Source: Hyalangium minutum
GTDB taxonomy: Bacteria > Myxococcota > Myxococcia > Myxococcales > Myxococcaceae
Direction of reading: 5' to 3'
Length of the DNA stretch: 64,000 nucleotides
Assembly (NCBI RefSeq): GCF_000737315.1
Contig: NZ_JMCB01000003.1
Coordinates: forward strand, 558,001-622,000
Part shown: positions 4,132 to 62,954 of the stretch, piece after piece
Position numbering within the stretch: position 1 is the first letter of the stretch
Layout of the letters: each line of letters opens with the position of its first letter
Notes under the pieces: model-generated
Seen by the model: only the letters and a program-made list of their open reading frames with translations
The model's database searches: none
Told to the model about the DNA's origin: nothing
Made by a program: the position numbers and the translations under genes

Positions 4132-4141
4132 GGGCGCTGAT

Positions 4142-7873: not shown

Positions 7874-7931
7874 ATAAACGTCTCCTGGCAAACGCTGCAC
7901 TGCGGCATGGCAGAGTGGGTACACGTCAGTC

Positions 7932-7945: not shown

Positions 7946-8007
7946 CAGCTGAGACGTAGGGGACAATCCTCCAGCCCCGCCGACGCAGTGATACAAGAGG
8001 GCCCGCT

Positions 8008-8730: not shown

Positions 8731-8757
8731 TCGCCCTGCCCTGCCCCTCCCGGGGCC

Positions 8758-14262: not shown

Positions 14263-14293
14263 GAATGTTCACCGGGAAGGAACGGGTGGGAGC

Positions 14294-28984: not shown

Positions 28985-29059
<75 letters not shown>

Positions 29060-29132: not shown

Positions 29133-29207
<75 letters not shown>

Positions 29208-44963: not shown

Positions 44964-45005
44964 GATGACTGCCTTTCTGTTGCTTTGCGCACTACCGGCG
45001 CGACC

Positions 45006-45144
45006 AAGGATCTTGTCGATGACCTCTTGCGGACTGCCGCCGACGAGTGCGCCCTGCGGCGAGAGCATCTGCTCGTAGGTGGCACGCGGCATCGGTCCGA
45101 GGATCGGCGACCAGATCGCCGAACGTATAGAGCCCGAGCTCCAT
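45006..45144 (-). pseudogene. LLM-class flavin-dependent oxidoreductase remnant
   Basis: N-terminus MELGLYTFGDLVADPRT fused out of frame to the C-terminal piece GPMPRATYEQMLSPQGALVGGSPQEVIDKIL; most of the gene is missing. Confidence 0.68.
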
Positions 45145-45232
45145 CCCGGGACCGATGTTCGCAACTTCCATGCGAGCAGTATTCGGCGCCCCAGGGCTCT
45201 CCACAATACGTAACTGTGTAATATACCAGTGC

Positions 45233-47124: not shown

Positions 47125-47185
47125 AGGTTACGGTATTTTGAGGGTTCGCCGCCCGCGACTCCGCCGGGCGTCTCGGGGAGGGCCG

Positions 47186-48778
47186 GTGAAGAGACTCAAG
47201 GTCGGCGTCGTGGAGCTGCTGGCACACTCGGTCACCACCCCATTCTTGAGGCGCCGCGTCATCGCGCCGGAGACGGCCTCGGTGATGCCTCAGGCGGTGG
47301 CCGTCTGGGCGGAGGAGCTTGGGTGCGAGGTGCACTATGCCGTCTGGACCGCGGAGGAGGATCTCCGCCGCCTGCTGCCCGACGGGCTGGACCTGGTGTT
47401 CATCTCCGCGTTCACCCGGGCCTCGTTCGTGGCCTACGCGCTCTCCCGGCATCTGCGCTCGGGCGGCGCGGTGACGGTGCTGGGCGGCCCCCACGCGCAG
47501 TCCTTCGCCGAGCACGCACGCGATTATTTCGACTACATCTGCCAGACAACGGACCGAGCGCTGATCGCGGATCTGCTCCAAGCACCCGAGCGGCAGGAAC
47601 GAGGCCTCGTGCTCTGCGCGGATGAGGGGCCCTCTTCCCTACCCGGCGTTGCTCAGCGCGCGCGCTTCATCGATCACTGCCTCCAGAAAGGCACCAGGGT
47701 GCTGCGGCTGGTGCCGATGCTCGGAAGCCTTGGGTGCCCGTACACGTGCAGCTTCTGTGTCGACGCTCCCGTGCGGTGGCGGGGCCTGCCAGTGGACCCG
47801 ATCATCGAAGACCTGCGCCACATCGAGCGCCGCTGGGGCGAGGACACGCTTGTCGGGTGGCACGATCCGAACTTCGGGGTGCGGTTCGACGAGTACCTGG
47901 GCGCCATCGAGGATTCGGGCACGCACCTGGTGCACTGCGCACACATGAGCCTGTCCCTGATGAGCGCGCAGAACGCGCGGCGGCTCGGACGGGCGCGGTT
48001 CGGGCTCCTGGCGCCGGGGGTCGAGTCCTGGTTCGACTTCTCCGACAAGTCCGGGCGGGCGCGAGTCGTGGGAGAGGCCAAGGTCCTGCACGTCGCCGAG
48101 ACCCTGAACGTCATCCAGGCCGAGGTGCAGCACATCCAGACGAACATGATCGTGGGGCTGGACACCGATCAGGGCGAGCTGCCCTGGGAGCTGACCCAGC
48201 GGCTCGCGGAGCTCTCGCCGGGCATCTACCCGACCTACTTCCTGGCGACGAACTTCTACAACGCGCCCTTGAGCCGGGAGCTGCACGCCTCGGGACGGAC
48301 GATGGCCATGCCGTTCTCGCTGCTGGACACCAACTGCTTCGGCAACGTGCGGCCCCTGCACTACTCGCCGGTGGAGCTCTACGATCGCCTCATCGAGCTC
48401 TACGCATTCGCCTACTCGTGGAAGGCCGTGCTCCGCCGCACGCGCGTGACACCCGGCGGCTGGGGAAAGCTGGTGAACTTCGGCCGCAGCGTCGACGAAG
48501 GCCGAGGCTTTATTGCCTTCCACCGGAGCCTTCGCGCCCGCCTCGAGAGCGACCGGGAGCTGCGCGCGTTCTACGAAGGCGAACGCGTGGCACCCCCCAC
48601 CTCCTTCATGGACGAGGTGAAGGCGCAGCTCGGCCCGTACCAGGAGCTGCTGCCCGCAGAGCTCCTCTCGCCCGAGCGCTACGCCGAGTCATTCCGAGCC
48701 GCCGCCGAGGCCGCCGTGCGCACGATCCGCGCCCCCGCCGCGGGTTCAGTCCCCAAGGAACGCGCGGCAGCATCCTGA
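47186..48778 (+). CDS. Cobalamin-dependent radical SAM protein
   Basis: B12-binding domain (DLVFISAFT...VTVLGGPHA) followed by SLGCPYTCSFC, DPNFG and GVES; GTG start after GGGGAGGG. Confidence 0.88.
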   Translation: MKRLKVGVVELLAHSVTTPFLRRRVIAPETASVMPQAVAVWAEELGCEVHYAVWTAEEDLRRLLPDGLDLVFISAFTRASFVAYALSRHLRSGGAVTVLGGPHAQSFAEHARDYFDYICQTTDRALIADLLQAPERQERGLVLCADEGPSSLPGVAQRARFIDHCLQKGTRVLRLVPMLGSLGCPYTCSFCVDAPVRWRGLPVDPIIEDLRHIERRWGEDTLVGWHDPNFGVRFDEYLGAIEDSGTHLVHCAHMSLSLMSAQNARRLGRARFGLLAPGVESWFDFSDKSGRARVVGEAKVLHVAETLNVIQAEVQHIQTNMIVGLDTDQGELPWELTQRLAELSPGIYPTYFLATNFYNAPLSRELHASGRTMAMPFSLLDTNCFGNVRPLHYSPVELYDRLIELYAFAYSWKAVLRRTRVTPGGWGKLVNFGRSVDEGRGFIAFHRSLRARLESDRELRAFYEGERVAPPTSFMDEVKAQLGPYQELLPAELLSPERYAESFRAAAEAAVRTIRAPAAGSVPKERAAAS

Positions 48779-49063
48779 ACGCCATGTCGCGCTGCGCGAT
48801 GTTTGGGGAGCAACCGGGCGTGCTTGGCACGACGTCCTGGGCAGGCTCGTTCCAGCGATATTTGCTGATGCCAGGGCGCCCCAGCGTCAGAGCAGGGTTA
48901 CCCCTTGAACCAATACAGCAGGTAGGCGCGGCCTCGCGTGGGGCTGCCGTGACCTCGGGCCGGCGGGGTGCAACCCCAGGCGCGGCTCGCTAGGCTTCGG
49001 TGTCGGACAACCAACAGAACATGCGTTGTGCCGCAGCATCGATTCCCCCTTCTTGAGGCCTGG

Positions 49064-52000
49064 ATGTCATCTCGTCCCCTGTTGTCCGGAGTGTATGTCG
49101 CGCTGACCGCGCTGCTGGTCTTTGCAGCCGGCTGTCATGAAGATCCGCCGCCGCCGCCCAGCGAGCAGCCGGATGCGACGCGCTCGCAGGTGCAGGTGAG
49201 CCGCAGCTCCAACGTGCTGGCCAACGGACGGGACGTCGTCACCCTCACCGTGAAGGTGGTGAAGGCGGATGGTGCGGCGCTGGCGGGCCGCACGGTGAAG
49301 CTGGAGATCAGCGGGGACGGCGCGATCGTCGCGCCGGCCTCGGGCCAGACCAACCCGGAAGGGGTGATGACGGCGACCCTGGTCTCCACCCAGGCCGGGC
49401 TCAAGAAGGTGAAGGCCTCGGTGGAAACGGACGGTGGACCGGTGGTGCTGACCTCCCAGCCCACCGTCGAGTTCATCGAGGTCCCAGCGGCGAAGCTGGC
49501 CTTCCTCAACACGAGCATTCAGGGCACGGCGGGCGCCCCGTTGAGCCCGGCCGTAGAGGTGGAGCTCCAGGATGCCGAGGGCCGTCGCGTCCCAGGCAGC
49601 ACGGCCTCGGTGACCGTGGCCCTGGCGACAGGGCCTTCGGACACGCTGGAAGGCACGCTCACGGTGGCGGCCGTGGATGGGGTCGCGCGCTTCAGCGATC
49701 TCGTCATCCAACAGGTGGGGACGGGCTACTCGCTGCGAGCCACCTCGGGAACGCTGACGGAGGCCACCAGTCCTTCCTTCGCGGTGACTGCCGCGCAAGC
49801 GGCGGTGCTGGAGCTGACAGGGCTTCCGAACAGCCTCGTCGCAGGGAGTTCGGCGGAGGTCCAGGTGACGCTGAAGGATGCCTTGGGCAACGTGGCCACC
49901 GGCTACACGGGCACGGTGCGCTTCACCTCCACGGATGGGGCGGCGGTGCTCCCGAGCGACTACACCTTCACGGCGGCCGACGCGGGGCAGAAGACGTTCA
50001 GCGCGGTGGAGCTGCGCACGGCGGGGTCCCAGTCCCTCACGGCCACGGATACGGTGACTGCCTCGCTGACGGGCACTCAGAGCACCACGGTCTCCCCTGC
50101 TGCGGCCACCAGCCTGAGCCTCTCGGCCCCGGCCTCCGCCACCGCGGGCAGTGCCTTCAGCGTCACGGTCACGGCGCGCGACGCGTTCAGCAACGCGGCC
50201 ACCGGCTACACGGGCACCGTGTCCTTCAGTTCGGATGACACGCGTGCGGCGCTGCCGGGCAGCTACACCTTCACGGCCGCCGATACGGGGGCGCACACCT
50301 TCAGCGTCACTTTGGGCACGACGGGCTCTCAGCCGGTGCGCGTCACCGACGGCACGCGCAACGCCAACGCCACCGTCACCGTCACTCCGGGCGCCGCCAC
50401 CAGCCTGAGCCTCGCTGCGCCCCTCACCGTCATGGCGGACGGCCCCTTCAACGTCACCGTCACGCTGCGGGACGCCTCCGGCAACGTGGCCACCGGCTAC
50501 ACCGGCACGGTCTCCTTCAGCTCGGACGATACGCGCGCAACGCTGCCGGGCAGCTACACCTTCACGGCCGCCGATGCGGGGGCGCACACCTTCAGCGTCA
50601 TCCTGGGCACGGCGGGCTCCCAGCCGCTCCGTGTGACCGACGGCACGCGCAACGCCAACGCCACTGTCACCGTCACACCGGCTACCGCTGCCACCCTGAG
50701 CCTCTCGGCTCCGGCCTCCGCTACGGCGGGCTCGCCCTTCTCCGTAACGGTCACGATGCGGGATACCTCCGGCAACGTGGCCACCGGCTACACCGGCACG
50801 GTGCACTTCACCTCCACGGACGGGGCGGCGGTGCTTCCGGCGGACTACACGTTCACGGCGGCCGACTCGGGGCAGAAGACATTCAGCACGGTGGAGTTGC
50901 GCACGGCGGGGGCTCAGTCCCTCACGGCCGCCGATCGGGTGACCACGACGCTGACGGATACCCGCAGCACCACGGTCTCCGCGGCCGCGGCCTCCAGCTT
51001 GAGCCTCTCCGCCCCGGCCTCTGCCCCCTCGGGCAGTGCCTTCGATGTCACGGTCACGGCCCGTGACGCGTTCAGCAACGTGGCCGCCGGCTACACGGGC
51101 ACTGTCTCCTTCAGCTCCGATGACACACGCGCCGGGCTGCCCACCAGCTACACCTTCACGGCCGCCGACGCAGGCAGCCATACCTTCAGTGTCACCCTGG
51201 GCACGGCAGGCGACCAACCGGTGCGCGTCACCGATGGCACGCGCAACGCCAGCGCCACTGTGAACGTCACCTCGGGGGCCGCCGCCACCCTGAGCCTCTC
51301 GGTCCCCTCCACCGCCACGGCAGGCAGTGCCTTCTCCGTGATGGTGACGCTGCGGGATGGCGCGGGCAACGTGGCCACCGGCTACACGGGCACGGTGCGC
51401 TTCACCTCCACAGACGCGGCGGCAGTGCTTCCAGGCGATTACACCTTCACCGCCGGCGACGCGGGGCAGAAGACGTTCAGCACGGTGGAGTTGCGCACGG
51501 CGGGGTCCCAGTCCCTCACGGCCACGGACACAGTGACCGCGACGATGACGGACACCCGCAGCACCACGGTCTCCCCTGGCGCGGCCGCCAGCCTGAGCCT
51601 CTCGGCCCCGGCCTCCGCCACCGCGGGCAGCGCCTTCAACGTCACCGTGCTGGCGCGCGACGCGTTCAACAACGTGGCCACCGGCTACACGGGTGCCGTG
51701 TCCTTCAGCTCGGATGACACGCGCGCGGCGCTGCCGAGCAGCTACACCTTCACGGCCGCCGACGCGGGCAGCCACACCTTCAGCGTCACCCTGGGCACGG
51801 TGGGCTCCCAGCCGGTGCGCGTCACCGACGGCACGCGCAACGCCAGTGCCACCGTCACCGTCAACCCGGGCGTCGCCGCCAGCCTGAGCCTCTCCGCCCC
51901 AGCCTCCGCCACCGCGGGCAGCGCCTTCAACGTCACGGTCACGGTCCGTGATGCCTCCGGCAACGTGGCCACCGGCTACACGGGCGCCGTGTCCTTCAGC

Positions 52001-55000
52001 TCGGATGACACGCGCGCGACGCTGCCGGGCAGCTACACCTTCACGGCAGCCGACGCAGGCAGCCACGCCTTCAGCGTCACCTTGGGTACGACGGGCAGCC
52101 AGCCCGTCCGGGTGACGGATGGCACACTCAACGCCAGCACCACCGTGAGTGTCACCCCAGCCGCCGCCGCGACCTTAAGCCTTTCGGTCCCGGCCTCTGC
52201 CACTGCGGGCAGCCCCTTCAACGTCACTGTCACGCTGCGAGACAGCTTCGGCAACGTGGCCACCGGCTACACGGGCACGGTGCACTTCACCTCGACGGAT
52301 GGAGCGTCGGTGCTCCCGGCGGACTCCACCTTCACGGCCGCGGACGCGGGGCAGAAGACGTTCAGCACGGTGGAACTGCGCACGGCGGGGTCTCAGTCCC
52401 TCACGGCCACGGACACAGTGACCGCGACGATGACGGACACCCGCAGCACCACGGTCTCCCCTGGCGCGGCCGCCAGCCTGAGCCTCTCGGCCCCGGCCTC
52501 CACCACCGCGGGCAGTCCCTTCGCGGTCACAGTGACAGCGCGCGACGCGTTCAACAACGTGGCCACCGGCTACACGGGCACCGTGTCCTTCAGCTCGGAT
52601 GACACGCGCGCGACGCTGCCGGGCAGCTACACCTTCACGGCCGCCAACGCGGGCAGCCGCGCCTTCAGCGTCACCTTGGGCACGGTGGGCTCCCAGCCGG
52701 TGCGCGTCACCGACGGCACGCGCAACGCCAGCGCCACCGTCACCGTCACTCCGGGCGCCGCCTCGAACCTGACCCTCTCGGCCCCAGCCTCTGCCACCGC
52801 GGGCAGCGCCTTCAACGTCACGGTCACGGCCCGCGATGCCTCCGGCAACATCGCCACCGGCTACAACGGCATGGTGTCCTTCACCTCGACCGATCCGGCC
52901 GCGGTGCTGCCGGGCATCTACCTCTTCACGCCGGGAGACGCGGGCGTGGCCTCCGTGTCCGTGGAGCTGCGCACTGCGGGGAACCGCACCATCACCGCGA
53001 CGGACACCCTCGATGCGGGGCTCACGCACACCGTGGCGGTGGCGGTCTCGGCCGGTGCTCCGGCGCAGCTCGCGTTCACCACGCAGCCACAGAGCGGCAC
53101 CGTGCGCGCGACCCTGGCCACGGTGCGTGTGGAGATCAGGGATGCCTACGGCAACACCTCCACTGCCTCGAGCCCCTCCGTGACGGTGAGCCTCACGGGC
53201 GGCAACCCTGCCTCTACGCTGAGTGGGACACGGACCGTCTCACCGGCCAGTGGCGTGGCCACGTTCTCGTCTCTCTCCATCGACCAGGAGGGCACGGGCT
53301 TCCAGCTCGTGGCCGCCGCCACGGGCCTGACGGGGGCCACGAGCACGGCTTTCCAGATCGTGGACAACCTGGCTCCGGCCGCGGCGGTCCTCACCGCCAC
53401 ACAGGCCTCGTCCTCCAGCATCCAGGTGTCGTGGACGGCGGTGGGCGATGACGGCACCCTGGGCACCGCCGCGAGCCACGATCTGCGCTACGCCACCGCT
53501 CCCATCACCAACGATGCGCAGTTCACCGCGGCCACGCCCGTTTCCCTGGCCGCGCCTCAGCCCCCGGGGAGCGCCGAGTCGGCCACCGTCACGGGACTGA
53601 ACCTCACGTCCACGTACTACTTCGCGCTCAAGGTCTTCGACGGGGCGGGCAACTCCAGCCTCTCGAACAGCCCCGGCGCGGGCGGCTCGGATCCCTGCGC
53701 GTCCGTCACGTGCACGCCGCCGGCCACAACGTGCTCGGCCAATGGCCGGAGCGTCGTCACCTACACCTCGGCGTGCGTGGACTCCGGAGGCGTGGGCGTC
53801 TGCCAAAACACCCCGACAAGCACGCTGTGCGCTTCGAACCAGACCTGCAACGCCGGCGCGTGCGTGCCAGTTACCGCGGCCAGCCAGCAGGGCCAGATCA
53901 TCATCAGTGAGTTCAGCGCCCTCGGCGCGGAGTTCATCGAGTTGCGCAACACCACGGCCACGGCCATCGACGTGCGGGGCTACACGCTGCGCAACATCGC
54001 AGGCCAGGAGGTGGATATCCGCGCTCCGAACGACCCGAACGGCACGGGCTCCACCCCGGTGCAGGTGCCCGCCAACGGCGTGCTCTACGGCATCCCCAAC
54101 CCGTCCAGCTCTGTCCCGGGAGGCGTGGGCTTCATCTACGGCGCGCCGGGCACCTCCTTCGCGCTGGCGGACACAGGGGACGCGCTCGCGCTCTACGCGG
54201 CGCCTCCGGCGGGCAACCTGCAGGACCTGGTGGACTTCCGCACCTTCGTCACCAACCCGAACACGCCACTGACGGCGAGCGCCTTCGTGGGCTTCTCCGG
54301 CAGCTCCACCCAGCTGGAACCCACCACATCCACGGCGGCTGGCAACGACACGGCCACCAACTGGTGCGTGAGCTTCTACCCGAACGGGGCTCGCGGCTCG
54401 CGCGTCACGAACACGGCGGGCGCTCTCAACGGCAGCTGCAAGGTGGCCGTCATCAACGAAGTCATCATCGATCCGCCGGGCACGGACGATCAGAAGTCCT
54501 TCGTGGAGCTGGCCGGCCCGGGTGGAGCCGTCATCGGCGGAGCAAAGATCACGGACGTGGAAGGTCTCGGGGGCACGGCGGGCGCACTGAATGCGGATGG
54601 AGATCTCAGCACGGGCGAGACGGACGGCGAGTTCACCCTCCCCGCCGGCACACGCTTCCCTGCGGATGGCATCCTGCTGGTGGCGGACGCGAACTCGTCG
54701 GTGACCTCGACTCAGGTGGTGGGCTTCACGCCGGGAGTGGACGTCCTGGCCCGGGACATGGACGTGGAGAACTCCGGAGGAGACTCCATCCAACTGGTCT
54801 CCGCCACGGGCACCCTGCTCGATGCGGTGGGCCATGACGCCAACGGCGCCACCCTGGCCACCAACGTGGCCTACAACGGCCTGGCCCTGTACGAGACGGC
54901 CACCGCGCTGACACCCACGACGCCAGCCGGCACTGCGGCCCCCTCGCTCGCTCGCAATACGCTGAGCACGGACACCGACAACAACCGCAACGACTTCCGG

Positions 55001-55756
55001 GCGGATCCCACGCCCACGCCTGGCTCGCCCAATGACGCCCTCAACCTCACCGTCTCCACGTTGTTCCCGGACGACGGACCGGCCACCGCGGGAGCCTCCA
55101 GCGTCCTGGTGACCGGAACGGATATCTCTCCGGGGTTCCGGGCGGCGTTCGGAGCCAACCCTTCGCAGCCCTGCACGGTGGCCAGCCCCACCTCCGCCAC
55201 CTGTAGCGTGGTGAGCAACACTGGCAACGCCGTGGCGAGGGTGAACGTGACGTTCTCCAACCCGGCGAGCGTGGGGACTCCCAACTTCGTCCTCCCCAGC
55301 GGATTCACCTACACGGGCAACGAGAACGAGACGAACAGCATGCTGGAGGCGGACTACTGCAACCTCCAGTTCCCCGCGAGCTTCTCGGTGCCGTCCAACA
55401 CGGCGACACCGCTGCTCTACGGCCGCATCTTCGAGACGAGCATCACCGAGTCCATGGGAGCGCCCTCGGGCATCCTGGCCGAGGTGGGCTATGGCAACAA
55501 CGGCACGGACCCGCGAAGCACCAACTCGTGGAAGTTCTTCTCCGCGAACTACAACGTGCAGGTCGGCAACGATGATGAGTTCTCAGGCTCGTTCACGGCG
55601 CCCACCGTGGCGTCGAACACGAACTTCTCGTACACATTCCGGTTCAGCCAGGACAACGGGCTGAAATGGACCTACTGCGACCTGAACGGAGCGGGCTCCA
55701 ACACGGGCATGAACTTCGAGACGACGCAGATGGGTGTGATGACGGTCACTCCCTAA
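49064..55756 (+). CDS. Giant surface lipoprotein/adhesin: Big_1 Ig domain, 11 Ig-like repeats, FN3, Cys-rich segment, 2 lamin-tail domains, IPT/TIG, myxobacterial C-terminal domain
   Basis: Lipobox FAAGC after start MSSRPLL (49064); ANGRDVVTLTV (invasin-like); repeated GNVATGYTGTV units; SWTAVGDDG (FN3); IISEF..EFIEL and INEV..SFVEL (LTD); EADYCNLQFP...WTYCD. Confidence 0.88.
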   Translation: MSSRPLLSGVYVALTALLVFAAGCHEDPPPPPSEQPDATRSQVQVSRSSNVLANGRDVVTLTVKVVKADGAALAGRTVKLEISGDGAIVAPASGQTNPEGVMTATLVSTQAGLKKVKASVETDGGPVVLTSQPTVEFIEVPAAKLAFLNTSIQGTAGAPLSPAVEVELQDAEGRRVPGSTASVTVALATGPSDTLEGTLTVAAVDGVARFSDLVIQQVGTGYSLRATSGTLTEATSPSFAVTAAQAAVLELTGLPNSLVAGSSAEVQVTLKDALGNVATGYTGTVRFTSTDGAAVLPSDYTFTAADAGQKTFSAVELRTAGSQSLTATDTVTASLTGTQSTTVSPAAATSLSLSAPASATAGSAFSVTVTARDAFSNAATGYTGTVSFSSDDTRAALPGSYTFTAADTGAHTFSVTLGTTGSQPVRVTDGTRNANATVTVTPGAATSLSLAAPLTVMADGPFNVTVTLRDASGNVATGYTGTVSFSSDDTRATLPGSYTFTAADAGAHTFSVILGTAGSQPLRVTDGTRNANATVTVTPATAATLSLSAPASATAGSPFSVTVTMRDTSGNVATGYTGTVHFTSTDGAAVLPADYTFTAADSGQKTFSTVELRTAGAQSLTAADRVTTTLTDTRSTTVSAAAASSLSLSAPASAPSGSAFDVTVTARDAFSNVAAGYTGTVSFSSDDTRAGLPTSYTFTAADAGSHTFSVTLGTAGDQPVRVTDGTRNASATVNVTSGAAATLSLSVPSTATAGSAFSVMVTLRDGAGNVATGYTGTVRFTSTDAAAVLPGDYTFTAGDAGQKTFSTVELRTAGSQSLTATDTVTATMTDTRSTTVSPGAAASLSLSAPASATAGSAFNVTVLARDAFNNVATGYTGAVSFSSDDTRAALPSSYTFTAADAGSHTFSVTLGTVGSQPVRVTDGTRNASATVTVNPGVAASLSLSAPASATAGSAFNVTVTVRDASGNVATGYTGAVSFSSDDTRATLPGSYTFTAADAGSHAFSVTLGTTGSQPVRVTDGTLNASTTVSVTPAAAATLSLSVPASATAGSPFNVTVTLRDSFGNVATGYTGTVHFTSTDGASVLPADSTFTAADAGQKTFSTVELRTAGSQSLTATDTVTATMTDTRSTTVSPGAAASLSLSAPASTTAGSPFAVTVTARDAFNNVATGYTGTVSFSSDDTRATLPGSYTFTAANAGSRAFSVTLGTVGSQPVRVTDGTRNASATVTVTPGAASNLTLSAPASATAGSAFNVTVTARDASGNIATGYNGMVSFTSTDPAAVLPGIYLFTPGDAGVASVSVELRTAGNRTITATDTLDAGLTHTVAVAVSAGAPAQLAFTTQPQSGTVRATLATVRVEIRDAYGNTSTASSPSVTVSLTGGNPASTLSGTRTVSPASGVATFSSLSIDQEGTGFQLVAAATGLTGATSTAFQIVDNLAPAAAVLTATQASSSSIQVSWTAVGDDGTLGTAASHDLRYATAPITNDAQFTAATPVSLAAPQPPGSAESATVTGLNLTSTYYFALKVFDGAGNSSLSNSPGAGGSDPCASVTCTPPATTCSANGRSVVTYTSACVDSGGVGVCQNTPTSTLCASNQTCNAGACVPVTAASQQGQIIISEFSALGAEFIELRNTTATAIDVRGYTLRNIAGQEVDIRAPNDPNGTGSTPVQVPANGVLYGIPNPSSSVPGGVGFIYGAPGTSFALADTGDALALYAAPPAGNLQDLVDFRTFVTNPNTPLTASAFVGFSGSSTQLEPTTSTAAGNDTATNWCVSFYPNGARGSRVTNTAGALNGSCKVAVINEVIIDPPGTDDQKSFVELAGPGGAVIGGAKITDVEGLGGTAGALNADGDLSTGETDGEFTLPAGTRFPADGILLVADANSSVTSTQVVGFTPGVDVLARDMDVENSGGDSIQLVSATGTLLDAVGHDANGATLATNVAYNGLALYETATALTPTTPAGTAAPSLARNTLSTDTDNNRNDFRADPTPTPGSPNDALNLTVSTLFPDDGPATAGASSVLVTGTDISPGFRAAFGANPSQPCTVASPTSATCSVVSNTGNAVARVNVTFSNPASVGTPNFVLPSGFTYTGNENETNSMLEADYCNLQFPASFSVPSNTATPLLYGRIFETSITESMGAPSGILAEVGYGNNGTDPRSTNSWKFFSANYNVQVGNDDEFSGSFTAPTVASNTNFSYTFRFSQDNGLKWTYCDLNGAGSNTGMNFETTQMGVMTVTP
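49800..53060 (+). repeat. Intragenic tandem Ig-like repeats with a higher-order (ABBAB)x2+A' structure
   Basis: The conserved caacg(t/c)ggcc-type anchor occurs at 49888, 50191, 50482, 50773, 51076, 51367, 51670, 51961, 52252, 52555 and 52846. Spacings are 303, 291, 291, 303, 291, repeated twice (1479-bp period). Confidence 0.92.
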
Positions 55757-56355
55757 GCCGGCACGGGGATCTGCAGGCAGTACCTCCCGAACCCCACCAG
55801 CGAGCTGAAGCGCGGGTGGAGGTCCGGGGGGTACTCGAACCGGCGGGCAGCCCGGGCCAGCTCGGCGAGGTGAGCGTGGTAGCCGCCCGCGATCGCCGAG
55901 AGCATGGGCGCGAGCGGATCCTCTCCCGAAGCCACCTCCCCCGCGGCGCGCTCCAGCGCTTCGAGCCCGCCTGGGTATGACTGGAGCAACTGCAGGTCGT
56001 AGGCGATCACGCCGTCCTCATGGAACGAGGACAGCAGGTGCTTGATCAGGACGTGCGGCGTGGCGAGCAGCCCATTCCAGACGATCACCTGCTGGGGGCA
56101 GTAGAGGAGCTGGAGCGGAACCCGGAGCAGAATGTGGCCCCAGAGACTCCGGCGGTTGGCGGCGTGCTCGATGGGCGTCTCATTGAACGCGAAGGGCAGC
56201 ATCTCGAGCGTCGCGGCCTTCACCTGTGCCGGATGAGGAACCGCCTCCAGGAGGCCCTGCGCGACGAAGAACTCGAACCGAGGCTCCCAGCCGCTGTCCC
56301 GGCAGAGCCCCACCTTCAGCCCCAGCTCGAACACCCGCTCTATCGTCAATGACAT
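55753..56355 (-). CDS. Hypothetical protein, HED-YDLQLL family paralogue 1
   Basis: 200-aa ORF, clearly collinear with 58027-58644 (RVPLQ, KHLLS..HED...YDLQLLQS, RFEYP, PRF..LVGF..C). Confidence 0.82.
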   Translation of the reverse strand: MSLTIERVFELGLKVGLCRDSGWEPRFEFFVAQGLLEAVPHPAQVKAATLEMLPFAFNETPIEHAANRRSLWGHILLRVPLQLLYCPQQVIVWNGLLATPHVLIKHLLSSFHEDGVIAYDLQLLQSYPGGLEALERAAGEVASGEDPLAPMLSAIAGGYHAHLAELARAARRFEYPPDLHPRFSSLVGFGRYCLQIPVPA

Positions 56356-56399
56356 GGGAAGCCTGTCCTGTCGGCGGCCGCTACTCTAGAACAAGGGCC

Positions 56400-57182
56400 A
56401 TGGACCCAAAACCCGGAGGGCTCAAGTACAGGACGGCGCTCATCACCGGAGCCTCAGGAGGAATCGGGCGCGGGCTGGCCGCGTGGTTTGCTCGGCGCGA
56501 AGTGAAGGTCTTCGGTGCCGCTCGCCGCTTGGAGGAACTCGAAGCGCTCGCGCGAGAGCTCCAGGGACAGGGAGAGCTCATCCCGGTAAGGCTGGATGTG
56601 GCCGACGCCCGGGCGACCCTGGAGACCCTGCGATCGATCGACGATGCGTGTGGAGGGCTCGACCTCGTCGTGGCGAACGCGGCCGTGGCACTGGAGACTC
56701 CGGGAGACGCGCCCTCATGGGATGCGGTGGAGCGGATCCTCGACGTGAACGTCCGAGGGGCCGCCGCCACGCTCACCGCAGTGGCAGACCGGATGGCCTC
56801 ACGCGGCCGTGGCCACCTGGTGGGCATGTCCTCCCTGGGTGGAGGACGCGGTGTCCCCCGGCACAACACCTACAGCGCGTCCAAGGCCTTCCTCACCAAC
56901 TTCCTCGAAGGGCTGCGGATCGAGCTCGCGCCCCGAGGGGTTCAGGTGACCACCATCCATCCTGGCTTCGTGAAGACCCCCGGCACGGCGGGCAACACGT
57001 TCAAGATGCCGTTCCTGCTCGAGCTCGACGATGCGGCCGAGCGCATCGGCCGCGCCATCGTGCGAGGCTCGGCTGAGTTCTCGTTCCCCTGGCAGACGGC
57101 GCTGATGGCGAAGCTGGTGCGGATGCTCCCGAATGCGCTCTGGGATCGCGCCGCGAGGAGCCTGGGGCCTGGACGCGAGTAA
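56400..57182 (+). CDS. Short-chain dehydrogenase/reductase (SDR)
   Basis: TGASGGIG, VANAA, YSASK, HPGFVKTP; start MDPKPGG at 56400. Confidence 0.92.
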   Translation: MDPKPGGLKYRTALITGASGGIGRGLAAWFARREVKVFGAARRLEELEALARELQGQGELIPVRLDVADARATLETLRSIDDACGGLDLVVANAAVALETPGDAPSWDAVERILDVNVRGAAATLTAVADRMASRGRGHLVGMSSLGGGRGVPRHNTYSASKAFLTNFLEGLRIELAPRGVQVTTIHPGFVKTPGTAGNTFKMPFLLELDDAAERIGRAIVRGSAEFSFPWQTALMAKLVRMLPNALWDRAARSLGPGRE

Positions 57183-57211
57183 GCAACGGATCCGTGGCAT
57201 AGTGCGGCGCG

Positions 57212-58027
57212 ATGAAGGGTGCCGAATCCCCCGTGGATACCGTCTCCGAGCCCTACTTCGAGCGCCTGTGCGAGCTGGCGGCGCGCGACCAGTGGCGGCT
57301 CGAGGATCTCGACTGGCACACGCTCGATGTGGCGGCACTCCCGGAGGAGTTCCGGCAGACCGCGGCCGATGGCTTCGCGCAGCTCCAGTGGGGAGAGCGG
57401 ACCGCGCAGCACGCGGCGGCGAGGCTCGTGGAGCTCCTGCCCGAGGGCTCCGCGCGAGCGTTCCTCGTGACGCAGCGCACGGACGAGGCCCGGCACGTGG
57501 CCTTCTTCGAGCGAGTCATGCAGGTGCTCGGCTGTGAGGGGCGCGTGAGGCCCTCGGTGCAGCGGCTGATGCGCGAGGTCCAGGAGGCCGACACGCCCGA
57601 GGCGCTGGTGCTCGGCATGCAGATCCTCATCGAGGGCGTGGCCCACTCGCTCTTCCAGGAGGCGGCCAAGGTGGTCAACGGCTTCGAGGCGGACGAGAGC
57701 CTCGCGGGCCCGCTCCAGGCGCTGAAGAAGGTCATGGGCGAGTGGATGCCTCGGCTGCTCGCGAGAGACGAGAGCCGGCACATCGCCTTTGGGATCCACT
57801 ACCTGCGCCAGCGCCTGCCCCGGCTCGACGGCGCGTCCCGGCGCCAGTTGGAAGAGAAGGTCTCGCTGTGGGGCGAGTGGGTGCTGGAGCAGGCCCGGGA
57901 TCCGGATCTCGTGTACGGGATTGGCATCGACGGCGAGGCGGTGTGCGGGCAGCTGCTCGAGGATCTGAACCTCCGCCTCGGGCAGGTGGGGCTCGAGACG
58001 CGGATCGCACCCTTGAAGGCGGCGTGA
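57212..58027 (+). CDS. Ferritin-like di-iron carboxylate enzyme (R2lox/desaturase/ADO-like fold)
   Basis: Four-helix ligand pattern WGE...DEARH...IEG...DESRH. Confidence 0.85.
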   Translation: MKGAESPVDTVSEPYFERLCELAARDQWRLEDLDWHTLDVAALPEEFRQTAADGFAQLQWGERTAQHAAARLVELLPEGSARAFLVTQRTDEARHVAFFERVMQVLGCEGRVRPSVQRLMREVQEADTPEALVLGMQILIEGVAHSLFQEAAKVVNGFEADESLAGPLQALKKVMGEWMPRLLARDESRHIAFGIHYLRQRLPRLDGASRRQLEEKVSLWGEWVLEQARDPDLVYGIGIDGEAVCGQLLEDLNLRLGQVGLETRIAPLKAA

Positions 58028-58644
58028 TGGGCACCGAGCAATCCATCCAGGAGCGGATCGGCTTCTTCGTGAAGCACGGGTACCTCGATCGGCTGCCGAC
58101 GCCCTGGCAATTGAAGGTGGGCTGGCTGGCGATGCTGCCCATCACCCTGAGCGAGAGCGAGCGGGAGCGAGAGCGCAGCCGGAACACACTGATGGGGCAG
58201 ATCCCCATCCGGGTGCCGCTTCAGGTCCTCTACAGCCCGAGACAGTTCGTCACGGACACGGGGATCACCCAGGGCTCGGAGGCCCTCGTGAAGCACGTGC
58301 TCAGCGTGTACCACGAGGATGCGTTCCTCGGTTACGACCTGCAGTTGTTGCAGTCGCATCCCAACGGCCTGGCGCTGCTGCGCGAAGAGGCGGCGAAGGT
58401 TGTCGAGGGCAAGACGCTCTGGGCGCCTTACCTGCGCAAGCTGGTGGGCTGGCCGGGCTACCACGAGGGGCTCATCCGGCTGGCAGAGGCGGCCGAGCGC
58501 TTCGAGTACCCGGATCCGCTGGATCTCGATCCGCGCTTCGCGACGCTGGTGGGCTTCTCGGAGTTCTGCTGCTCGATGCCGGACTGGCCTCCGAGCGGGT
58601 TCTACGGCTTCGAGTTCGAGAAGGTCTTCTCGCGGTGGAAGTGA
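58027..58644 (+). CDS. Hypothetical protein, HED-YDLQLL family paralogue 2
   Basis: ATG overlaps the TGA of the di-iron gene (58025-58029); 205 aa; collinear with 55753-56355. Confidence 0.85.
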   Translation: MGTEQSIQERIGFFVKHGYLDRLPTPWQLKVGWLAMLPITLSESERERERSRNTLMGQIPIRVPLQVLYSPRQFVTDTGITQGSEALVKHVLSVYHEDAFLGYDLQLLQSHPNGLALLREEAAKVVEGKTLWAPYLRKLVGWPGYHEGLIRLAEAAERFEYPDPLDLDPRFATLVGFSEFCCSMPDWPPSGFYGFEFEKVFSRWK

Positions 58645-59426
58645 GGCCCGGCGATCTGGAGGCGTGTGATCCGGAGTTCCAGCGGCGCCATGCCGGCTGG
58701 ATCACGAAGGCCGTGCGCACGTGGTTCCGAGCGGACATCCAGGGAATGGAGCACCTGCCGGACGGTCCATTCGTGGGCGTCGGGAACCACAGCGGAGGGG
58801 TGCTGATTCCGGACACCCTGCTGTGGGTCGGCACGTACCACACGTCGGGGCGCAAGCCGCCGATGGTGACGCTGGCCCACGATGGGATGTTCGACGCGTA
58901 CCCGAAGCGGCTCGCGAGCGCCCTGGCGAAGCTGGGGGCGGTACGGGCGCGCAAAGAGATCGCGGCCGAGGCGCTTCGGAGAGGCTTCGCCGTGCAGGTG
59001 TACCCGGGAGGCGACCACGACGCGTGCCGGCCTTTCTCGCGGAGGAACGAGATCGTCTTCGCGGGCCGCAAGGGCTACGTGGAACTGGCACGGGAGGCAG
59101 GAGTGCCGATCGTGCCCGTGGTGTCGGTGGGAGCGCACGAAGCCTTGGTGGTGCTCTCGGACGGGGCGTCGCTGGCGAAGCGGCTGGGCCTTGACCGCCG
59201 CTTCCGCCTGAAGGCGTTTCCGATCACGTTGTGCCTGCCGTGGGGAATCTGGCTGGGTCCCCTGCCCGGCTATCTGCCGCTGCCCGCGAAGATGAGCCTT
59301 CGGGTGTTGCCGCCAATCTCCGCCGAGGGTGGGGACATCGACGCGATTGACGCGCGTGTGCGAGCATCCATGCAACGCGCGGCTGACGAGCTGGCACGAA
59401 GGAGACGCTTCCCATGGATCGGATGA
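58641..59426 (+). CDS. Lysophospholipid/MGAT-DGAT2-like acyltransferase
   Basis: NHSGG (HxxxxD: HSGGVLIPD), YPGGD, RKGYVELAREAGVPIVPV; GTGA overlap with the upstream gene. Confidence 0.88.
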   Translation: MRPGDLEACDPEFQRRHAGWITKAVRTWFRADIQGMEHLPDGPFVGVGNHSGGVLIPDTLLWVGTYHTSGRKPPMVTLAHDGMFDAYPKRLASALAKLGAVRARKEIAAEALRRGFAVQVYPGGDHDACRPFSRRNEIVFAGRKGYVELAREAGVPIVPVVSVGAHEALVVLSDGASLAKRLGLDRRFRLKAFPITLCLPWGIWLGPLPGYLPLPAKMSLRVLPPISAEGGDIDAIDARVRASMQRAADELARRRRFPWIG

Positions 59427-60892
59427 AGGTCTTCAGGTTCGACGAGTCCCTGGACGTGAACACCGCGACAGAGAGCGAGCTCGGGGCGAGGCTGGAGCGG
59501 CTCTGGGACAAAGCGCCGGAGCTGCGGCCTCGGCCGGAGATGCACGACTACCAGCTCACCTACCCGCCCGCGGTGCAGATGGAGAAGCGGGACGGCTACC
59601 GGCGCACACCCACGGACGAGGAATACCTGCGCGACGCGGTGGGAGCGTTCAACGCGGCCGGGTATTACTTCCATTTTGGCTTCTGCAAGTACCGTTGCCG
59701 CTACTGCTTCCACTACGAGCTGCTGACGCGGCACAACGATGAGCTGATGTCGCGGTACGTGGATGCGCTCTCGCTGGAAATGCGGCACGTCCGGGAGCTG
59801 ACGCCGAAGCTGAAGCCCGCGCTGTACTTCCTGGGAGGCGGCACCCCGACGGCCCTGCCAGTGCACCTGCTGGAGCGGTTCCTGAAGAACCTGGTGACGC
59901 ACTTCGGCCCGCCGCGCACGTCGATGAGCACGGTGGAGGCCAAGCCGGTGACGGCGTCGGATGACAAGCTCCGGGCTCTGGTCCAGGCGGGCTTCCGGCG
60001 CATCAACTTCGGGGTGCAGACGCTGGATCCGGAGCTCTACGCTTTCCACCACCAGAAGGAGGACATGCGGGTCGCCCTGGATGCGATCGAGCGGGCCCGG
60101 AAGCTCGGTTTCGAGTACATCAACATCGACATCATGACGGGGCTGGAGCGGCAAACGCCCGAGTCCTGGCAGAAGACGCTCACGGAGATCGAGCGGCTGG
60201 CGACGAGCGGCGCAGTGGACAGCGTCTTCATCTACCCGTACCACGACGATCCGCGCAGCGGCACGTACGGGAAGCCCGGGGCAGTCCCCTCCATCGTGCA
60301 GACAGCGCACAGCGACGCGCAGGCGCGGGCGCTGTTCACGCGGCTGGGCTGGAAGGAGCTGGGCGCGAGGTTCTACAGGGCGCCTCGGCACGTGCGGCGC
60401 GAGATCCTGGAGCTGGCGAAGCTGCGAGTGAACCCGGCCTACGGCGAGGTGCTGTACCACGGGCTGGGCAACTCCAGCTTCTCGATCGGGGATCGGGCGA
60501 CGTTCCTGAACCACCGGGACGTGCAGGACTACTGCGCGGCGGTGGAGAAAGGCGGCCTGGGCATCGCGTACTGGCGGACGCTGGATAACGCCCAACGGGC
60601 AACGCGGGACGTGACGTTCGACCTGCTCTACAGCCCGTTCACGCGGGTACGCTCACGGGCGAGGAAGTACGGGGCGGAGACGATGGCGCACCACCGCAAG
60701 CAGCTGGAGCGGTGGGCCGAGCTGGGCCTGGGCGAAGAGAACTGGCTGCTGGGCACGTTCTCGCTGTCACCGCTCGGCAAGCTGGTGCACCAGCAGCTCA
60801 TCCCCCAGCACTACCTGGCCGAGGATCGCCGCGAGCTGGAAGAGACGATGCAGCGGCGCCAGCAAGAAGGCCGCCGCTACCGAGGCTACTGA
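59423..60892 (+). CDS. HemN-like (class C-type) radical SAM protein
   Basis: FCKYRCRYCFHY (CxxxCxxC), LGGGTPT, INFGVQT, NIDIMTGL..QT; ATGA overlap with the acyltransferase stop. Confidence 0.86.
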   Translation: MKVFRFDESLDVNTATESELGARLERLWDKAPELRPRPEMHDYQLTYPPAVQMEKRDGYRRTPTDEEYLRDAVGAFNAAGYYFHFGFCKYRCRYCFHYELLTRHNDELMSRYVDALSLEMRHVRELTPKLKPALYFLGGGTPTALPVHLLERFLKNLVTHFGPPRTSMSTVEAKPVTASDDKLRALVQAGFRRINFGVQTLDPELYAFHHQKEDMRVALDAIERARKLGFEYINIDIMTGLERQTPESWQKTLTEIERLATSGAVDSVFIYPYHDDPRSGTYGKPGAVPSIVQTAHSDAQARALFTRLGWKELGARFYRAPRHVRREILELAKLRVNPAYGEVLYHGLGNSSFSIGDRATFLNHRDVQDYCAAVEKGGLGIAYWRTLDNAQRATRDVTFDLLYSPFTRVRSRARKYGAETMAHHRKQLERWAELGLGEENWLLGTFSLSPLGKLVHQQLIPQHYLAEDRRELEETMQRRQQEGRRYRGY

Positions 60893-60909: not shown

Positions 60910-62892
60910 TCAGAGGTTGACGGAGCCGTCAGCCATTTGCGCCAGGCCCGGATGCGTCGTCACGAGCAGCACCTGCGTCAGCGTGCCCAGGTGCTTCAGC
61001 ATGCGCCCAATCAGCGGCAGCTTCACCTCGTCCATGCCGACGAACGGGTGCTCCATGATGAACGGGTACTTCACCCGGGTGCTCACCTTCTCCACGACCA
61101 CCATGCGCAACGCCAGGTAGTACATGTCCAGGTCGCGCGGGGGGATGTCGCCCACGAGCAGCTGTTGGCCCGGCACGAACACCGAAGCCCTACCGTCCTT
61201 GTCCCACTCGACGCCCAGATAGCGGCGATCCGTGAGCGCGCTCAGGTACTGGGTGCAGCGATCCCGCAGCATCCCGCCCAGCGTGGTGATGTCCGTGGAC
61301 AGCAGATCCGCCGCCAGCATCATCACCACCGGAGACGGATCCTCCATCGGCCCCGAGCCCATCCCCGCCGGCTCCGCACCCGCCGGCCCCGCCCCAGCGG
61401 GAGTCGGAGGCGGCGCTCCCGCCTTGGCCAGAACGATGGACTCCTTGGTCCGGGAGAGCTCGCGCTCCACCTCGCGCAGATCGCGCACGAAGGAGCCCTT
61501 CCGGGAGACTTCGACGCTGAGCTCGTCGATCTGCTGCTTGATCTCGTCGCGCTGCTGCCCGGCGGCGACGAAGTCCGGATCGGCCTCCATGGCCGCGAGC
61601 TGATCCCTCAGCTCGTTGAAGCGCTGCTCCAACAGGCCCTTGCGCTCGAAGACGCCTGGAATGTCCTCGTGGTTCTCCAGCTCGAGGATCTTCATCGCCT
61701 TGCGCACCGGCGAGACCTCAGCCTCGAACTCCTCGAGGATCTTCTTCTCGCGGGCGGAGAACATGCCCTCCTTGTTGCGCACGGTGGACGTCTTCGACAG
61801 GTCGTCCACGTACCGCAGCGCCAGCATCGCCGCGAAGCCGAACGCCGGGATGTCCAGCAGCGTCAGGTACCGCCAGCCGCTGTCCACCGCGAAGCCCAGG
61901 ATGATGCCGCCCAGCAGGAACAGGGCGCCGACCCCGAGCCCCGCCCAGAACAGCCGGTTCTGCTTCAGGGGCTCCACCGCGACCGGAGCCGCCGCCGCGT
62001 CCTGCTCGCGCTCCACGGCCAGCCGGTTCAGCGCGTCGTCCTTCTTGGCCACCACCTTGGAATAGCGCTCCACGCGCGTCAGGATGTCCGCGGGCAGCCC
62101 CAGCGACTCGGGGGTGGGCGCGGCGTTCCACGCGTTCTCCGCGTCCCGCACGGCCGCCTTCACGCCCTCGGTGCTCTTCAGCTTCCGCTCGGTCTCGAAG
62201 AGCTGCGAGTTCAACCCGTCCAGCTTGAACTGCACCTCCTCCATCTCGCGAGACTTCACCAGTTCCTGCTCCAGCTCCTTCACCTTGGCCTCAGCCGCGG
62301 GGATGTTCTCCGCGGGGGCCACCGCCTGGGTGCTGGCCAGGGCCGGCATGTTCGGGTTGCTCGCGAGCCCTCCGTGCCCGTGCCCGCTGTGCAGGCCCGG
62401 GTTGCTCGCCGCGCCGGGCATCGACGGCCGCTTGAGATCCGGCTTCGAGGTGCGCACCCGCGGGCGGCGCGACGGGAGCTGGCTCGGCATCAGGCAGCAC
62501 ACCTGCTCCCAGACGTTGCGCGACGGCAGGCCCACCTGCACGCGCAGGAACTGGCCGATCTCCGCCGTGTCCCCGGACACCAGCTCCGGAGGCTGCCCCG
62601 GCACCGTCTGCTTGTGCAGCGTCCCCGAGCCGCCCAGCTCCCGTAGCAGCCGGTACGTGAGGTTGTCCTGGCCCAGCATGGTGAAGGCGGACTTGCCACG
62701 CTTATCGGCCTGCGCCGAGAAGCTGGCATCGTCGCCACGCCCATCGGCGTACAGGAGCGCCAGGGACAGCGCCGCCAGAGGCGTCATCTCGGCGGCTGGG
62801 GGCTTGAGGACGAGGTAGCCCGGCTTGAGCTGGAAGCGGCCTTGTGCCGAGAAACCCCGGACGTTTTGGACAGCAACCTCGAGGAAGTGCAT
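60910..62892 (-). CDS. SMC/Rad50/YhaN-like coiled-coil membrane protein with degenerate ATPase motifs
   Basis: N-terminal FLEVAVQNVRGF strand; coiled coils; two TM helices (LFWAGLGVGALFLLGGIILG..., IPAFGFAAMLAL); C-terminal ..YLALRM...PFIMEHPFVGMD resembles the Walker B/D-loop region. Confidence 0.65.
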   Translation of the reverse strand: MHFLEVAVQNVRGFSAQGRFQLKPGYLVLKPPAAEMTPLAALSLALLYADGRGDDASFSAQADKRGKSAFTMLGQDNLTYRLLRELGGSGTLHKQTVPGQPPELVSGDTAEIGQFLRVQVGLPSRNVWEQVCCLMPSQLPSRRPRVRTSKPDLKRPSMPGAASNPGLHSGHGHGGLASNPNMPALASTQAVAPAENIPAAEAKVKELEQELVKSREMEEVQFKLDGLNSQLFETERKLKSTEGVKAAVRDAENAWNAAPTPESLGLPADILTRVERYSKVVAKKDDALNRLAVEREQDAAAAPVAVEPLKQNRLFWAGLGVGALFLLGGIILGFAVDSGWRYLTLLDIPAFGFAAMLALRYVDDLSKTSTVRNKEGMFSAREKKILEEFEAEVSPVRKAMKILELENHEDIPGVFERKGLLEQRFNELRDQLAAMEADPDFVAAGQQRDEIKQQIDELSVEVSRKGSFVRDLREVERELSRTKESIVLAKAGAPPPTPAGAGPAGAEPAGMGSGPMEDPSPVVMMLAADLLSTDITTLGGMLRDRCTQYLSALTDRRYLGVEWDKDGRASVFVPGQQLLVGDIPPRDLDMYYLALRMVVVEKVSTRVKYPFIMEHPFVGMDEVKLPLIGRMLKHLGTLTQVLLVTTHPGLAQMADGSVNL

Positions 62893-62919
62893 GCGCGGCC
62901 CCATCCTAGCGCACCAACG

Positions 62920-62954
62920 AAAAAAGGAGCGTCCGCGAACGGACACTCCTTTTT
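62920..62954 (-). terminator. Rho-independent terminator after rplS
   Basis: Minus strand aaaaaggagtgtccg-ttcg-cggacgctcctttttt: GC stem, UUCG loop, U6 tail. Confidence 0.85.

Follow-up and report, generated by a model that had tools for sequence, protein, structure and literature searches.

What does a myxobacterium make with a ferritin-fold oxidase, a protein of no known family, an acyltransferase and a HemN-family radical S-adenosylmethionine (SAM) enzyme whose genes run into one another? This question is raised by a stretch of 64,000 nucleotides of Hyalangium minutum (hereafter the window; GC content 66-71%), in which an earlier note had drawn a lipid-tailoring operon of five genes headed by a short-chain dehydrogenase/reductase (SDR) gene, with the inference that its products tailor an acyl chain and install it in a membrane lipid. 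Here, we find that four of these genes, G2 to G5, are indeed conserved together, that the SDR gene appears to be an add-on, and that the unit as drawn had left out a further gene, encoding a freestanding homologue of the DUF2156 aminoacyl-tRNA transferases, which in the window is located 9 kb upstream of G3 on the opposite strand. The module probably yields a new kind of modified lipid. As the best explanation we favour, with slightly less than even confidence, that a hydrophobic acceptor receives an amino acid in a tRNA-dependent reaction as well as an acyl group, and that the conjugate is then tailored oxidatively and by radical SAM chemistry.

A gene module conserved across Myxococcota

Gene calling by the pattern of GC content at third codon positions (GC3) recovered all five co-oriented open reading frames (ORFs) at 56400-60892, and the families previously assigned to their products (SDR, di-iron oxidase, unknown, acyltransferase and HemN-like radical SAM enzyme) were confirmed by Pfam and NCBIfam. 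G2 (57212-58027, +; 271 aa) encodes a ferritin-fold di-metal carboxylate oxidase nearest to R2lox, which Pfam places in PF11583 (AurF family), whereas G3 (58027-58644, +; 205 aa), the signature gene of the module, encodes a soluble all-alpha protein of an unclassified family. They are followed by G4 (58641-59426, +; 261 aa), encoding a soluble acyltransferase of the lysophospholipid acyltransferase (LPLAT)/DGAT2 type, and G5 (59414-60892, +, alternative start at 59423; 492 aa), encoding a HemN-family radical SAM enzyme. All three junctions between these genes show the overlapping stop and start codons that had been described: TGATG at 58025-58029 (G2/G3, with a GTG at 58024 as a possible alternative start), GTGA at 58641-58644 (G3/G4) and ATGA at 59423-59426 (G4/G5), the last of which would become an overlap of 13 nucleotides if the in-frame ATG at 59414, kept in orthologues, is used. 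The SDR and G2 genes are separated by 29 bp and do not overlap. The GC3 values of 0.81-0.92 support coding, with 0.81 for the SDR gene versus 0.84-0.92 for the others. The DUF2156 gene (46129-47124, -; 331 aa) encodes a PF09924 (LPG_synthase_C) protein. In line with the earlier note, domains of polyketide synthases, non-ribosomal peptide synthetases or acyl carrier proteins were found in none of the ORFs scanned across the window.

The window proteins were mapped onto 25 loci from a scan of one genome per species and onto 12 further contigs. The loci of the species-level scan belong to the families Myxococcaceae, Polyangiaceae, Nannocystaceae and Sandaracinaceae; two metagenome-assembled genomes (MAGs) among the loci bear generic proteobacterial labels, and the other labelled members are Myxococcota. 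By label or by similarity, the more than 30 related loci all point to Myxococcota; the species-level scan yielded no locus from M. xanthus. The earlier note had named a lack of joint conservation elsewhere as what would refute its proposal. We observed that G2 to G5 are conserved together, with G3, G4 and G5 in more than 20 loci at protein identities of 54-92%, and that the tight coupling of the genes is retained in Myxococcaceae. Moreover, the DUF2156 gene is linked to G3 wherever upstream DNA is available (>25 loci): in Polyangia, Nannocystaceae and Sandaracinaceae it directly precedes G3 in the same orientation, and in Myxococcaceae it is divergent and somewhat further upstream. The complete co-directional order G2-DUF2156-G3-G4-G5, the likely ancestral operon, is present in three loci (L037, L020 and L024). 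In addition, one locus (L036) has G5 inverted yet adjacent to the module, and a distant variant (L038) has G2, DUF2156, G4 and G5 clustered at 38-54% identity in a convergent layout, with no detectable G3. Clade-specific losses were found for G4 (in the L010-12/L032 clade) and for G5 (L028, L029 and L031).

This gene arrangement is far beyond chance, and a linkage that outlasts both divergence and rearrangement points to a joint function of the module genes. Conversely, the genes could be neighbours by descent that serve unrelated processes, as would be compatible with the loss of one member in several clades. However, the linkage survives across Myxococcota families at 38-70% identity and has withstood inversions, insertions and the exchange of every flanking gene, and the translational coupling is conserved, which renders such a fortuitous neighbourhood highly improbable.

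The SDR gene and the borders of the unit

The SDR gene (56400-57182, +) encodes a classical SDR of 260 aa (adh_short 1e-41; best NCBIfam match PRK07024 with 217 bits, below the cutoff of 266). Its membership in the operon is not borne out by its distribution, since it is confined to the window and two further loci (L006 and L030), each time head-to-head with a diverged paralogue of G3. Comparison with the closest relative (L001, a Hyalangium sp. MAG; 84-87% nucleotide identity), which lacks the SDR gene, revealed an insertion of 8.5 kb at 48768-57231 of the window, with a cargo of a 2262-aa Ig-domain surface protein, the G3 paralogue and the SDR. Moreover, the motif GTGGCATAGT (57194-57203, +) is placed 8-10 nucleotides 5' of the G2 start codon and hence between the SDR gene and G2. 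In the window and in L001, L002, L004, L007 and L030, GGCATAGT, preceded by T or GT, is found at a fixed position before G2; this upstream motif is thus kept in six Myxococcaceae loci though the upstream gene differs. The conservation of GTGGCATAGT whatever the upstream gene suggests an expression signal specific to G2 to G5, with the SDR gene as a separate add-on. The motif is possibly a -10-like promoter element giving rise to a near-leaderless transcript, or a translation signal for G2 to G5; a scan for sigma-70 promoters and terminators yielded nothing exceeding shuffled controls.

These observations bear on the proposal of a self-contained, SDR-led operon of five genes, in which an acyl chain would undergo keto/hydroxy redox, desaturation or hydroxylation and methylation before its installation in a glycerolipid, with no tRNA chemistry. 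The co-orientation of the five genes, the correct family assignments, the DGAT2/LPLAT-type G4 and the R2lox-like G2 are in keeping with it, as is the position of the DUF2156 gene in the window, 9 kb off on the other strand. However, the SDR gene is absent from most loci, it resides inside an insertion with a conserved motif between it and G2, and the linkage of the DUF2156 gene is universal in G3-bearing loci with upstream coverage and persists even in L038. We therefore regard this proposal as quite unlikely.

A freestanding DUF2156 aminoacyl-tRNA transferase homologue

The DUF2156 protein of the window matches PF09924 with an E value of 3.5e-23 and 82.6 bits (cutoff 27.5) over profile positions 3-296 of 298, and a profile of its orthologues aligned over the full length with MprF (7f47), A-PGS (4v34) and LpiA (6lv0) in the PDB at E values of 5e-6 to 2e-5. 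With the NCBIfam model bifunc_MprF it reached 24.9 bits at a cutoff of 600. The protein shows neither a membrane nor a flippase domain, and no hydrophobic 19-mer exceeds 1.6. Being soluble and devoid of a flippase domain, it is classified as a freestanding DUF2156 protein. Glycosyl-diacylglycerol is one of the acceptors of the characterised lipid-modifying DUF2156 enzymes. These enzymes draw the amino acid from aminoacyl-tRNA and attach it to a hydroxyl of the lipid, further acceptors being phosphatidylglycerol, cardiolipin, diacylglycerol and ergosterol (PMC8913301). Members of PF09924 that esterify amino acids onto lipids exist also in a freestanding form (PMC8913301, PMC6103681), as exemplified by the fungal ErgS (PMC8913301).

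Like MprF, LysX, the Ala-diacylglycerol synthase and ErgS/ErdS, the module protein has the full-length PF09924 double-GNAT architecture, in a freestanding form as in ErgS. In contrast to these enzymes, it has no flippase domain or paired alpha/beta-hydrolase, and its sequence is very distant. The module further differs from the aminoacyl-glycerolipid synthase (aaGLS) systems in that the DUF2156 gene is clustered with genes for an acyltransferase, a HemN-like radical SAM enzyme, a di-metal oxidase and G3. To our knowledge, no described aaGLS system has such partner genes.

The acyltransferase G4 and the radical SAM enzyme G5

G4 matches both PF01553 (1e-9; 38.8 bits versus 23) and the DAGAT family PF03982 (2.9e-6; 26.9 versus 22 bits) above the gathering thresholds, and its motifs NHSGG (comprising H50), YPGGD and AGRxGY do not vary among 16 orthologues. 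The stretch RKGYVELAREAGVPIVPV resembles what we take to be the DGAT2 signature motif. Taken together, the PF03982 match and the HPHG-like (NHSGG) and RxGFxKLA-like motifs relate G4 to DGAT2/MGAT enzymes, from which it differs in being soluble, with 261 aa and no N-terminal membrane hairpin, and in being bacterial and operon-encoded.

For G5, the match to Radical_SAM (PF04055; 1e-20, 74.8 bits versus 29.5) is above the cutoff, whereas the NCBIfam matches STM4012 (134 bits), hemN (118.1, cutoff 324.95), ChuW/HutW (114.8, cutoff 400) and HemW (99.3, cutoff 205.4) all remain below their cutoffs. Among PDB entries, HemN (1olt) aligned at 4.7e-23 over residues 82-391, with the equivalents of Y56 and H58, the cluster cysteines and GGGTP kept, and the match to NocN (9p2u; 9.6e-12) is limited to the radical SAM core. 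In 15 orthologues with a mean column identity of 74%, C91, C95, C98, H100 and GGGTP are invariant. The cluster motif thus reads C91-x3-C95-x2-C98-F-H100, the fourth cysteine of the HemN motif CX3CX2CXC being replaced by an invariant histidine. In addition, G5 has a long conserved N-terminal region of about 84 residues before the core. Within this region, the invariant DYxLTYPPA (59546-59572, G5 residues 45-53) resembles PRYTSYPTA, presumably a motif of E. coli HemN; BLAST of the G5 N-terminus against that of E. coli HemN aligned the cluster region only and failed to align these motifs. HemW, which like G5 has no fourth cysteine, is on the other hand truncated at the N-terminus (PMC11442138). 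The histidine in place of the fourth cysteine and the long N-terminus indicate that G5 is neither a canonical HemN nor a HemW. With HemN/CgdH, HemW and the class C methyltransferases (ChuW, NosN/NocN and Jaw5) it has in common CX3CX2C, the Y56/H58 equivalents, GGGTP and a HemN-like C-terminal domain; it differs from them by scores below every curated cutoff, by the invariant histidine and by its fixed acyltransferase partner.

The likeness to HemN raises the possibility that G5 acts on a porphyrinogen or haem, with the DUF2156 protein drawing on Glu-tRNA(Glu), the substrate of HemA, and the module modifying, diverting or regulating the flux of the haem pathway or a tetrapyrrole conjugate. In three Polyangiaceae loci (L009, at 1931-9190, L014 and L018), the order ccsA/hemX-like-hemA (glutamyl-tRNA reductase)-DUF2156-G3-G4-G5-hemC is co-directional with gaps of 1-50 bp. 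HemN is the best structural relative of G5, with its key residues kept and a long N-terminal region unlike that of HemW, and HemA likewise uses an aminoacyl-tRNA. However, the hemA/hemC context is restricted to one related clade (flanks 93% and 79% identical) and hence reflects one or two evolutionary events, and haem genes occur in no other annotated context. Moreover, G5 fails the hemN, HemW and ChuW cutoffs (118 < 325, 99 < 205 and 115 < 400, respectively), lacks the fourth cysteine in favour of His100 and has an N-terminal motif that BLAST did not align, and there is no known tetrapyrrole role for an acyltransferase or a DUF2156 enzyme. A function in tetrapyrrole metabolism consequently appears rather improbable.

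The oxidase G2 and the signature protein G3

G2 matches PF11583 with 8.8e-9 and 35.4 bits (cutoff 29.6) over only 48 residues; all its orthologues are assigned to this family, and their source names read 'diiron oxygenase' or 'ferritin-like'. The G2 profile aligned over the full length with the R2lox group of 4hr0 in the PDB (E 2e-7, Geobacillus R2lox best), while the VlmB homologue 6d9f gave an E value of 0.03 over 65 residues. In line with this result, a Foldseek search with the AlphaFold2 model (predicted local distance difference test, pLDDT, 94.6) returned R2lox (24% identity) and the ribonucleotide reductase R2 subunit as top matches, and neither AurF nor CmlI was among the top 50 fold matches. 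The ligands E62, E92xxH95, E141 and E187xxH190, shared by all of 60 sequences, form a 2-His/4-carboxylate site with the ligand set of R2lox. There is no histidine four residues before E187, which is presumably the position of the third histidine ligand in AurF. R2lox is known to crystallise with a bound long-chain fatty acid. Despite the best match in both sequence and fold, G2 differs from R2lox in its low identity, in its score with the NCBIfam R2lox model (35 bits, cutoff 194) and in its shorter length (271 versus ~315 aa).

G3 showed no match in Pfam, even at E<=10, or in NCBIfam, and the fold search of its all-alpha AlphaFold2 model (pLDDT 90.5) against the PDB gave no match, the best E value being 1.6. 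Judged by this model, G3 represents a new all-alpha family without a fold match. A HMMER scan of 1.84 billion representative proteins retrieved only 166 relatives, and the G3 search yielded 156 clusters at 57-89% identity, the labelled ones of which are Myxococcota (Hyalangium, Pyxidicoccus, Myxococcaceae and Sandaracinaceae). Throughout the superfamily, Q28, R62, G79, H96, D104, L105 and Y145 are invariant and H90 is nearly so. No relationship between G3 and G2 was detected by hhalign. G3 is usually translationally coupled to the DUF2156 gene, and a Pfam scan of 20 longer proteins of the superfamily detected fusions with SRPBCC lipid/polyketide-binding domains in two only. A remote G3 subfamily is again mostly myxobacterial, and in all three contexts (L033, L034 and L035) the remote relative lies directly downstream of a GntR/FCD regulator gene, which it overlaps; its downstream neighbour in L033 and L034 is a protein of ~184 aa of no known family.

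The combination of these proteins with a DUF2156 enzyme is reminiscent of actinobacterial azoxy clusters, in which a PF09924 enzyme of the VlmA type is found beside the di-iron oxygenase VlmB and the iron-binding helical protein VlmO (PMC9379638, PMC11705231). By analogy, the DUF2156 protein would aminoacylate a hydroxylamine or another small nucleophile and G2 would perform an N-oxidation, resulting in a metabolite with an N-O or N-N bond (azoxy-type), possibly with an aliphatic tail, instead of a membrane lipid. A PF09924 protein, a di-iron oxidase and a small helical protein with invariant His and Asp residues parallel VlmA/VlmB/VlmO of the valanimycin and azodyrecin pathways (PMC11705231). 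In addition, the di-metal oxidase gene lies directly upstream of the DUF2156 gene in the ancestral-looking operon, all G2 orthologues fall by Pfam into the AurF N-oxygenase family, an APH-type kinase encoded upstream in one clade loosely recalls VlmJ, and all module proteins are soluble, with no flippase among them.

However, in 12 annotated contexts the called neighbours included neither a flavin N-hydroxylase (VlmH/VlmR) nor DUF4260 (VlmO), whereas the azoxy pathways comprise both, together with a VlmB-like oxidase. The oxidase of the module has the R2/R2lox ferritin fold; it fits R2lox far better than the VlmB homologue, AurF and CmlI are missing from its closest folds, and its 2-His/4-carboxylate site lacks the additional histidine mentioned above. 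Moreover, G3 is not membrane-bound, in contrast to the DUF4260 protein, and gave no DUF4260 signal at E<=10, and the DGAT2-type acyltransferase and the HemN-like enzyme are without a counterpart in the azoxy pathways, which are known from actinobacteria, whereas the module is myxobacterial. Taken together, an azoxy-type product seems unlikely.

A candidate pathway for tRNA-linked lipid tailoring

From the gene content, the family membership, the intact active-site motifs and the linkage through rearrangements we infer substrates, order of steps and nature of the product as follows. The DUF2156 protein would esterify an aminoacyl group from aminoacyl-tRNA to a hydroxyl of the acceptor, and G4 would add an acyl ester, thereby either building the acceptor or capping the product. 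G2 could catalyse an O2-dependent oxidation that hydroxylates or desaturates the chain or else acts on the new amine, and G5 a SAM-dependent radical step, which might be a C-methylation or cyclopropanation or else an oxidative decarboxylation of the HemN type. G3 may serve as a non-catalytic or novel-catalytic partner, probably of the DUF2156 transferase, in substrate presentation or as a scaffold.

As the earlier note had proposed, a lipid-type product is the best-supported reading, because of the precedents for DUF2156 and DGAT2/LPLAT enzymes, the resemblance of G2 to R2lox, the lipid-type neighbours and the SRPBCC fusions of G3 relatives. With regard to the neighbours, which come from independent lineages, a gene for a PF04116 fatty-acid hydroxylase lies beside the module in L038, and a fatty-acid desaturase gene is found near it in the window and in L001. 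In a Sandaracinaceae MAG (L026, 1-8970), the module makes up the 3'-terminal part of a long aryl-polyene-like cluster of co-directional genes, which encode a ketoreductase, a ketosynthase, a halogenase-like flavoprotein, an acyl carrier protein, an AMP-ligase, an LpxL-like acyltransferase, a 4HBT thioesterase, LolA-like and DHDPS-like proteins and DUF3261. On examination of how widely they are conserved, this cluster, the hemA/hemC context and the APH kinase gene (L010-12 and L032) each turned out to be confined to a single lineage.

Several points weigh against tRNA-linked lipid tailoring. The specificity of DUF2156 enzymes is not predictable from sequence (PMC8913301), and PF09924 also holds the VlmA-type enzymes of azoxy pathways, which act on small hydroxylamines (PMC9379638). 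Furthermore, the module proteins are all devoid of membrane segments, and a flippase and an exporter are lacking; the lipid-type neighbours are each restricted to one lineage, the hemA-hemC placement in one clade points to tetrapyrroles, and HemN is a closer relative of G5 than any lipid-modifying radical SAM enzyme known. Finally, the existence of clades without G4 or G5 indicates that the chemistry is not uniform.

A more far-reaching version of lipid tailoring, which we consider doubtful, is a previously unseen lipid class, in which a neutral lipid or lipid-like acceptor is esterified with a tRNA-delivered amino acid and the conjugate is rebuilt by the HemN-type radical SAM enzyme and the R2lox-type oxidase. 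Here, G3 would be a partner of the transferase with a new fold, and the hemA-hemC placement would stem from a common use of Glu-tRNA. Oxidative decarboxylation might take place on the side chain of a glutamyl or aspartyl group; alternatively, the conjugate might undergo C-methylation plus N- or C-oxidation. If so, an R2lox-like protein would for the first time be given a physiological role, and a radical SAM step would be new to aminoacyl-lipid metabolism.

In its outline, the proposed tRNA-linked tailoring is reminiscent of ornithine lipids, which are made by OlsB/OlsA or OlsF and tailored by OlsC, OlsD and OlsE. In both cases, a GNAT-fold transferase supplies the amino acid, and an LPLAT-type O-acyltransferase and oxidative tailoring enzymes are present. 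However, the GNAT-fold enzyme of the module is of the tRNA-dependent PF09924 type and not of the OlsB type, and no matches to the OlsB, OlsA or OlsF families were obtained. We know of no radical SAM tailoring of ornithine lipids.

Full-text literature searches returned nothing that joins DUF2156 with a radical SAM enzyme, nothing on STM4012 and nothing on a HemN-like enzyme with an acyltransferase in myxobacteria; likewise, no published description of a pathway with this gene set was found, in agreement with the earlier note. The module thus combines known enzyme families in an undescribed way, together with a protein family without a fold match, and it could prove more novel once its product is known. 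tRNA-dependent aminoacylation of lipids is known as a surface-charge modification by one enzyme, whereas here the family is fixed in a multi-enzyme tailoring operon. If the proposed pathway holds true, the range of possible aminoacyl-lipids widens, and three little-understood groups of proteins acquire testable functions, namely the R2lox-like oxidases, the non-canonical HemN-like radical SAM enzymes and the new all-alpha family. Since cultured carriers exist, among them Hyalangium rubrum and Pyxidicoccus xibeiensis, the question is directly testable.

Lineage-specific genes and other features of the window

Two genes related to the module had been overlooked in the earlier inventory. The G3 paralogue (55753-56355, -; 200 aa, ~45% identity to G3), which is head-to-head with the SDR gene, was recognised by tblastn cross-matches; its alignments keep the residues invariant in the superfamily, and orthologues are present in L006, L007 and L030. 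The second gene (47138-48778, +; 546 aa), divergent from the DUF2156 gene, encodes a putative radical SAM enzyme of the B12-binding type with a CPYTCSFC (CX3CX2C) cluster motif; its Pfam matches to B12-binding (20.5 < 32.1) and Radical_SAM (20.9 < 29.5) are weak and below gathering. Orthologues of this Myxococcaceae-only accessory gene occupy the same position in L001, L002, L006, L007 and L030. Judging from these comparisons, the B12-type radical SAM enzyme, the SDR and the G3 paralogue represent lineage-specific additions in this genome. Between the DUF2156 and the B12-type radical SAM genes, the AT-rich motif TTACGGTATTTTGAGGG (~47133-47150) is kept in L001, L002 and L030 and occurs as a variant in L003 and L005; this region is probably a promoter region shared by the two genes.

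The 2262-aa ORF carried by the 8.5 kb insertion (48968-55756, +) has Big_1/invasin-like, fn3 and lamin-tail domains and an N-terminal hydrophobic segment; Hyalangium rubrum has a different cargo at this spot. A second insertion relative to L001 (43260-46135) contains genes for an NmrA-like NAD-binding protein (44496-45245, -) and a LysR regulator (45155-46117, +) and splits the fatty-acid desaturase gene (41792-42883) from the DUF2156 gene. Convergent with G5 lies a gene for a 678-aa protein (60910-62946, -) with no family match above threshold and a strongly hydrophobic stretch near residue 336; it was dropped as a candidate member of the module, being conserved only in the two closest relatives (L001 and L002). 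Elsewhere in the window, a 1834-aa DUF3686/DUF7902/AAA ATPase is encoded beside a 743-aa protein without a family (8758-16525, -). The PADLOC models for anti-phage defence matched none of nine proteins. Rfam, searched over the whole window, detected two tRNAs only, namely two tRNA-Met (CAT) genes at 28985-29059 and 29133-29207 (-), 74 bp apart, whose identical scores indicate that they are probably identical copies.

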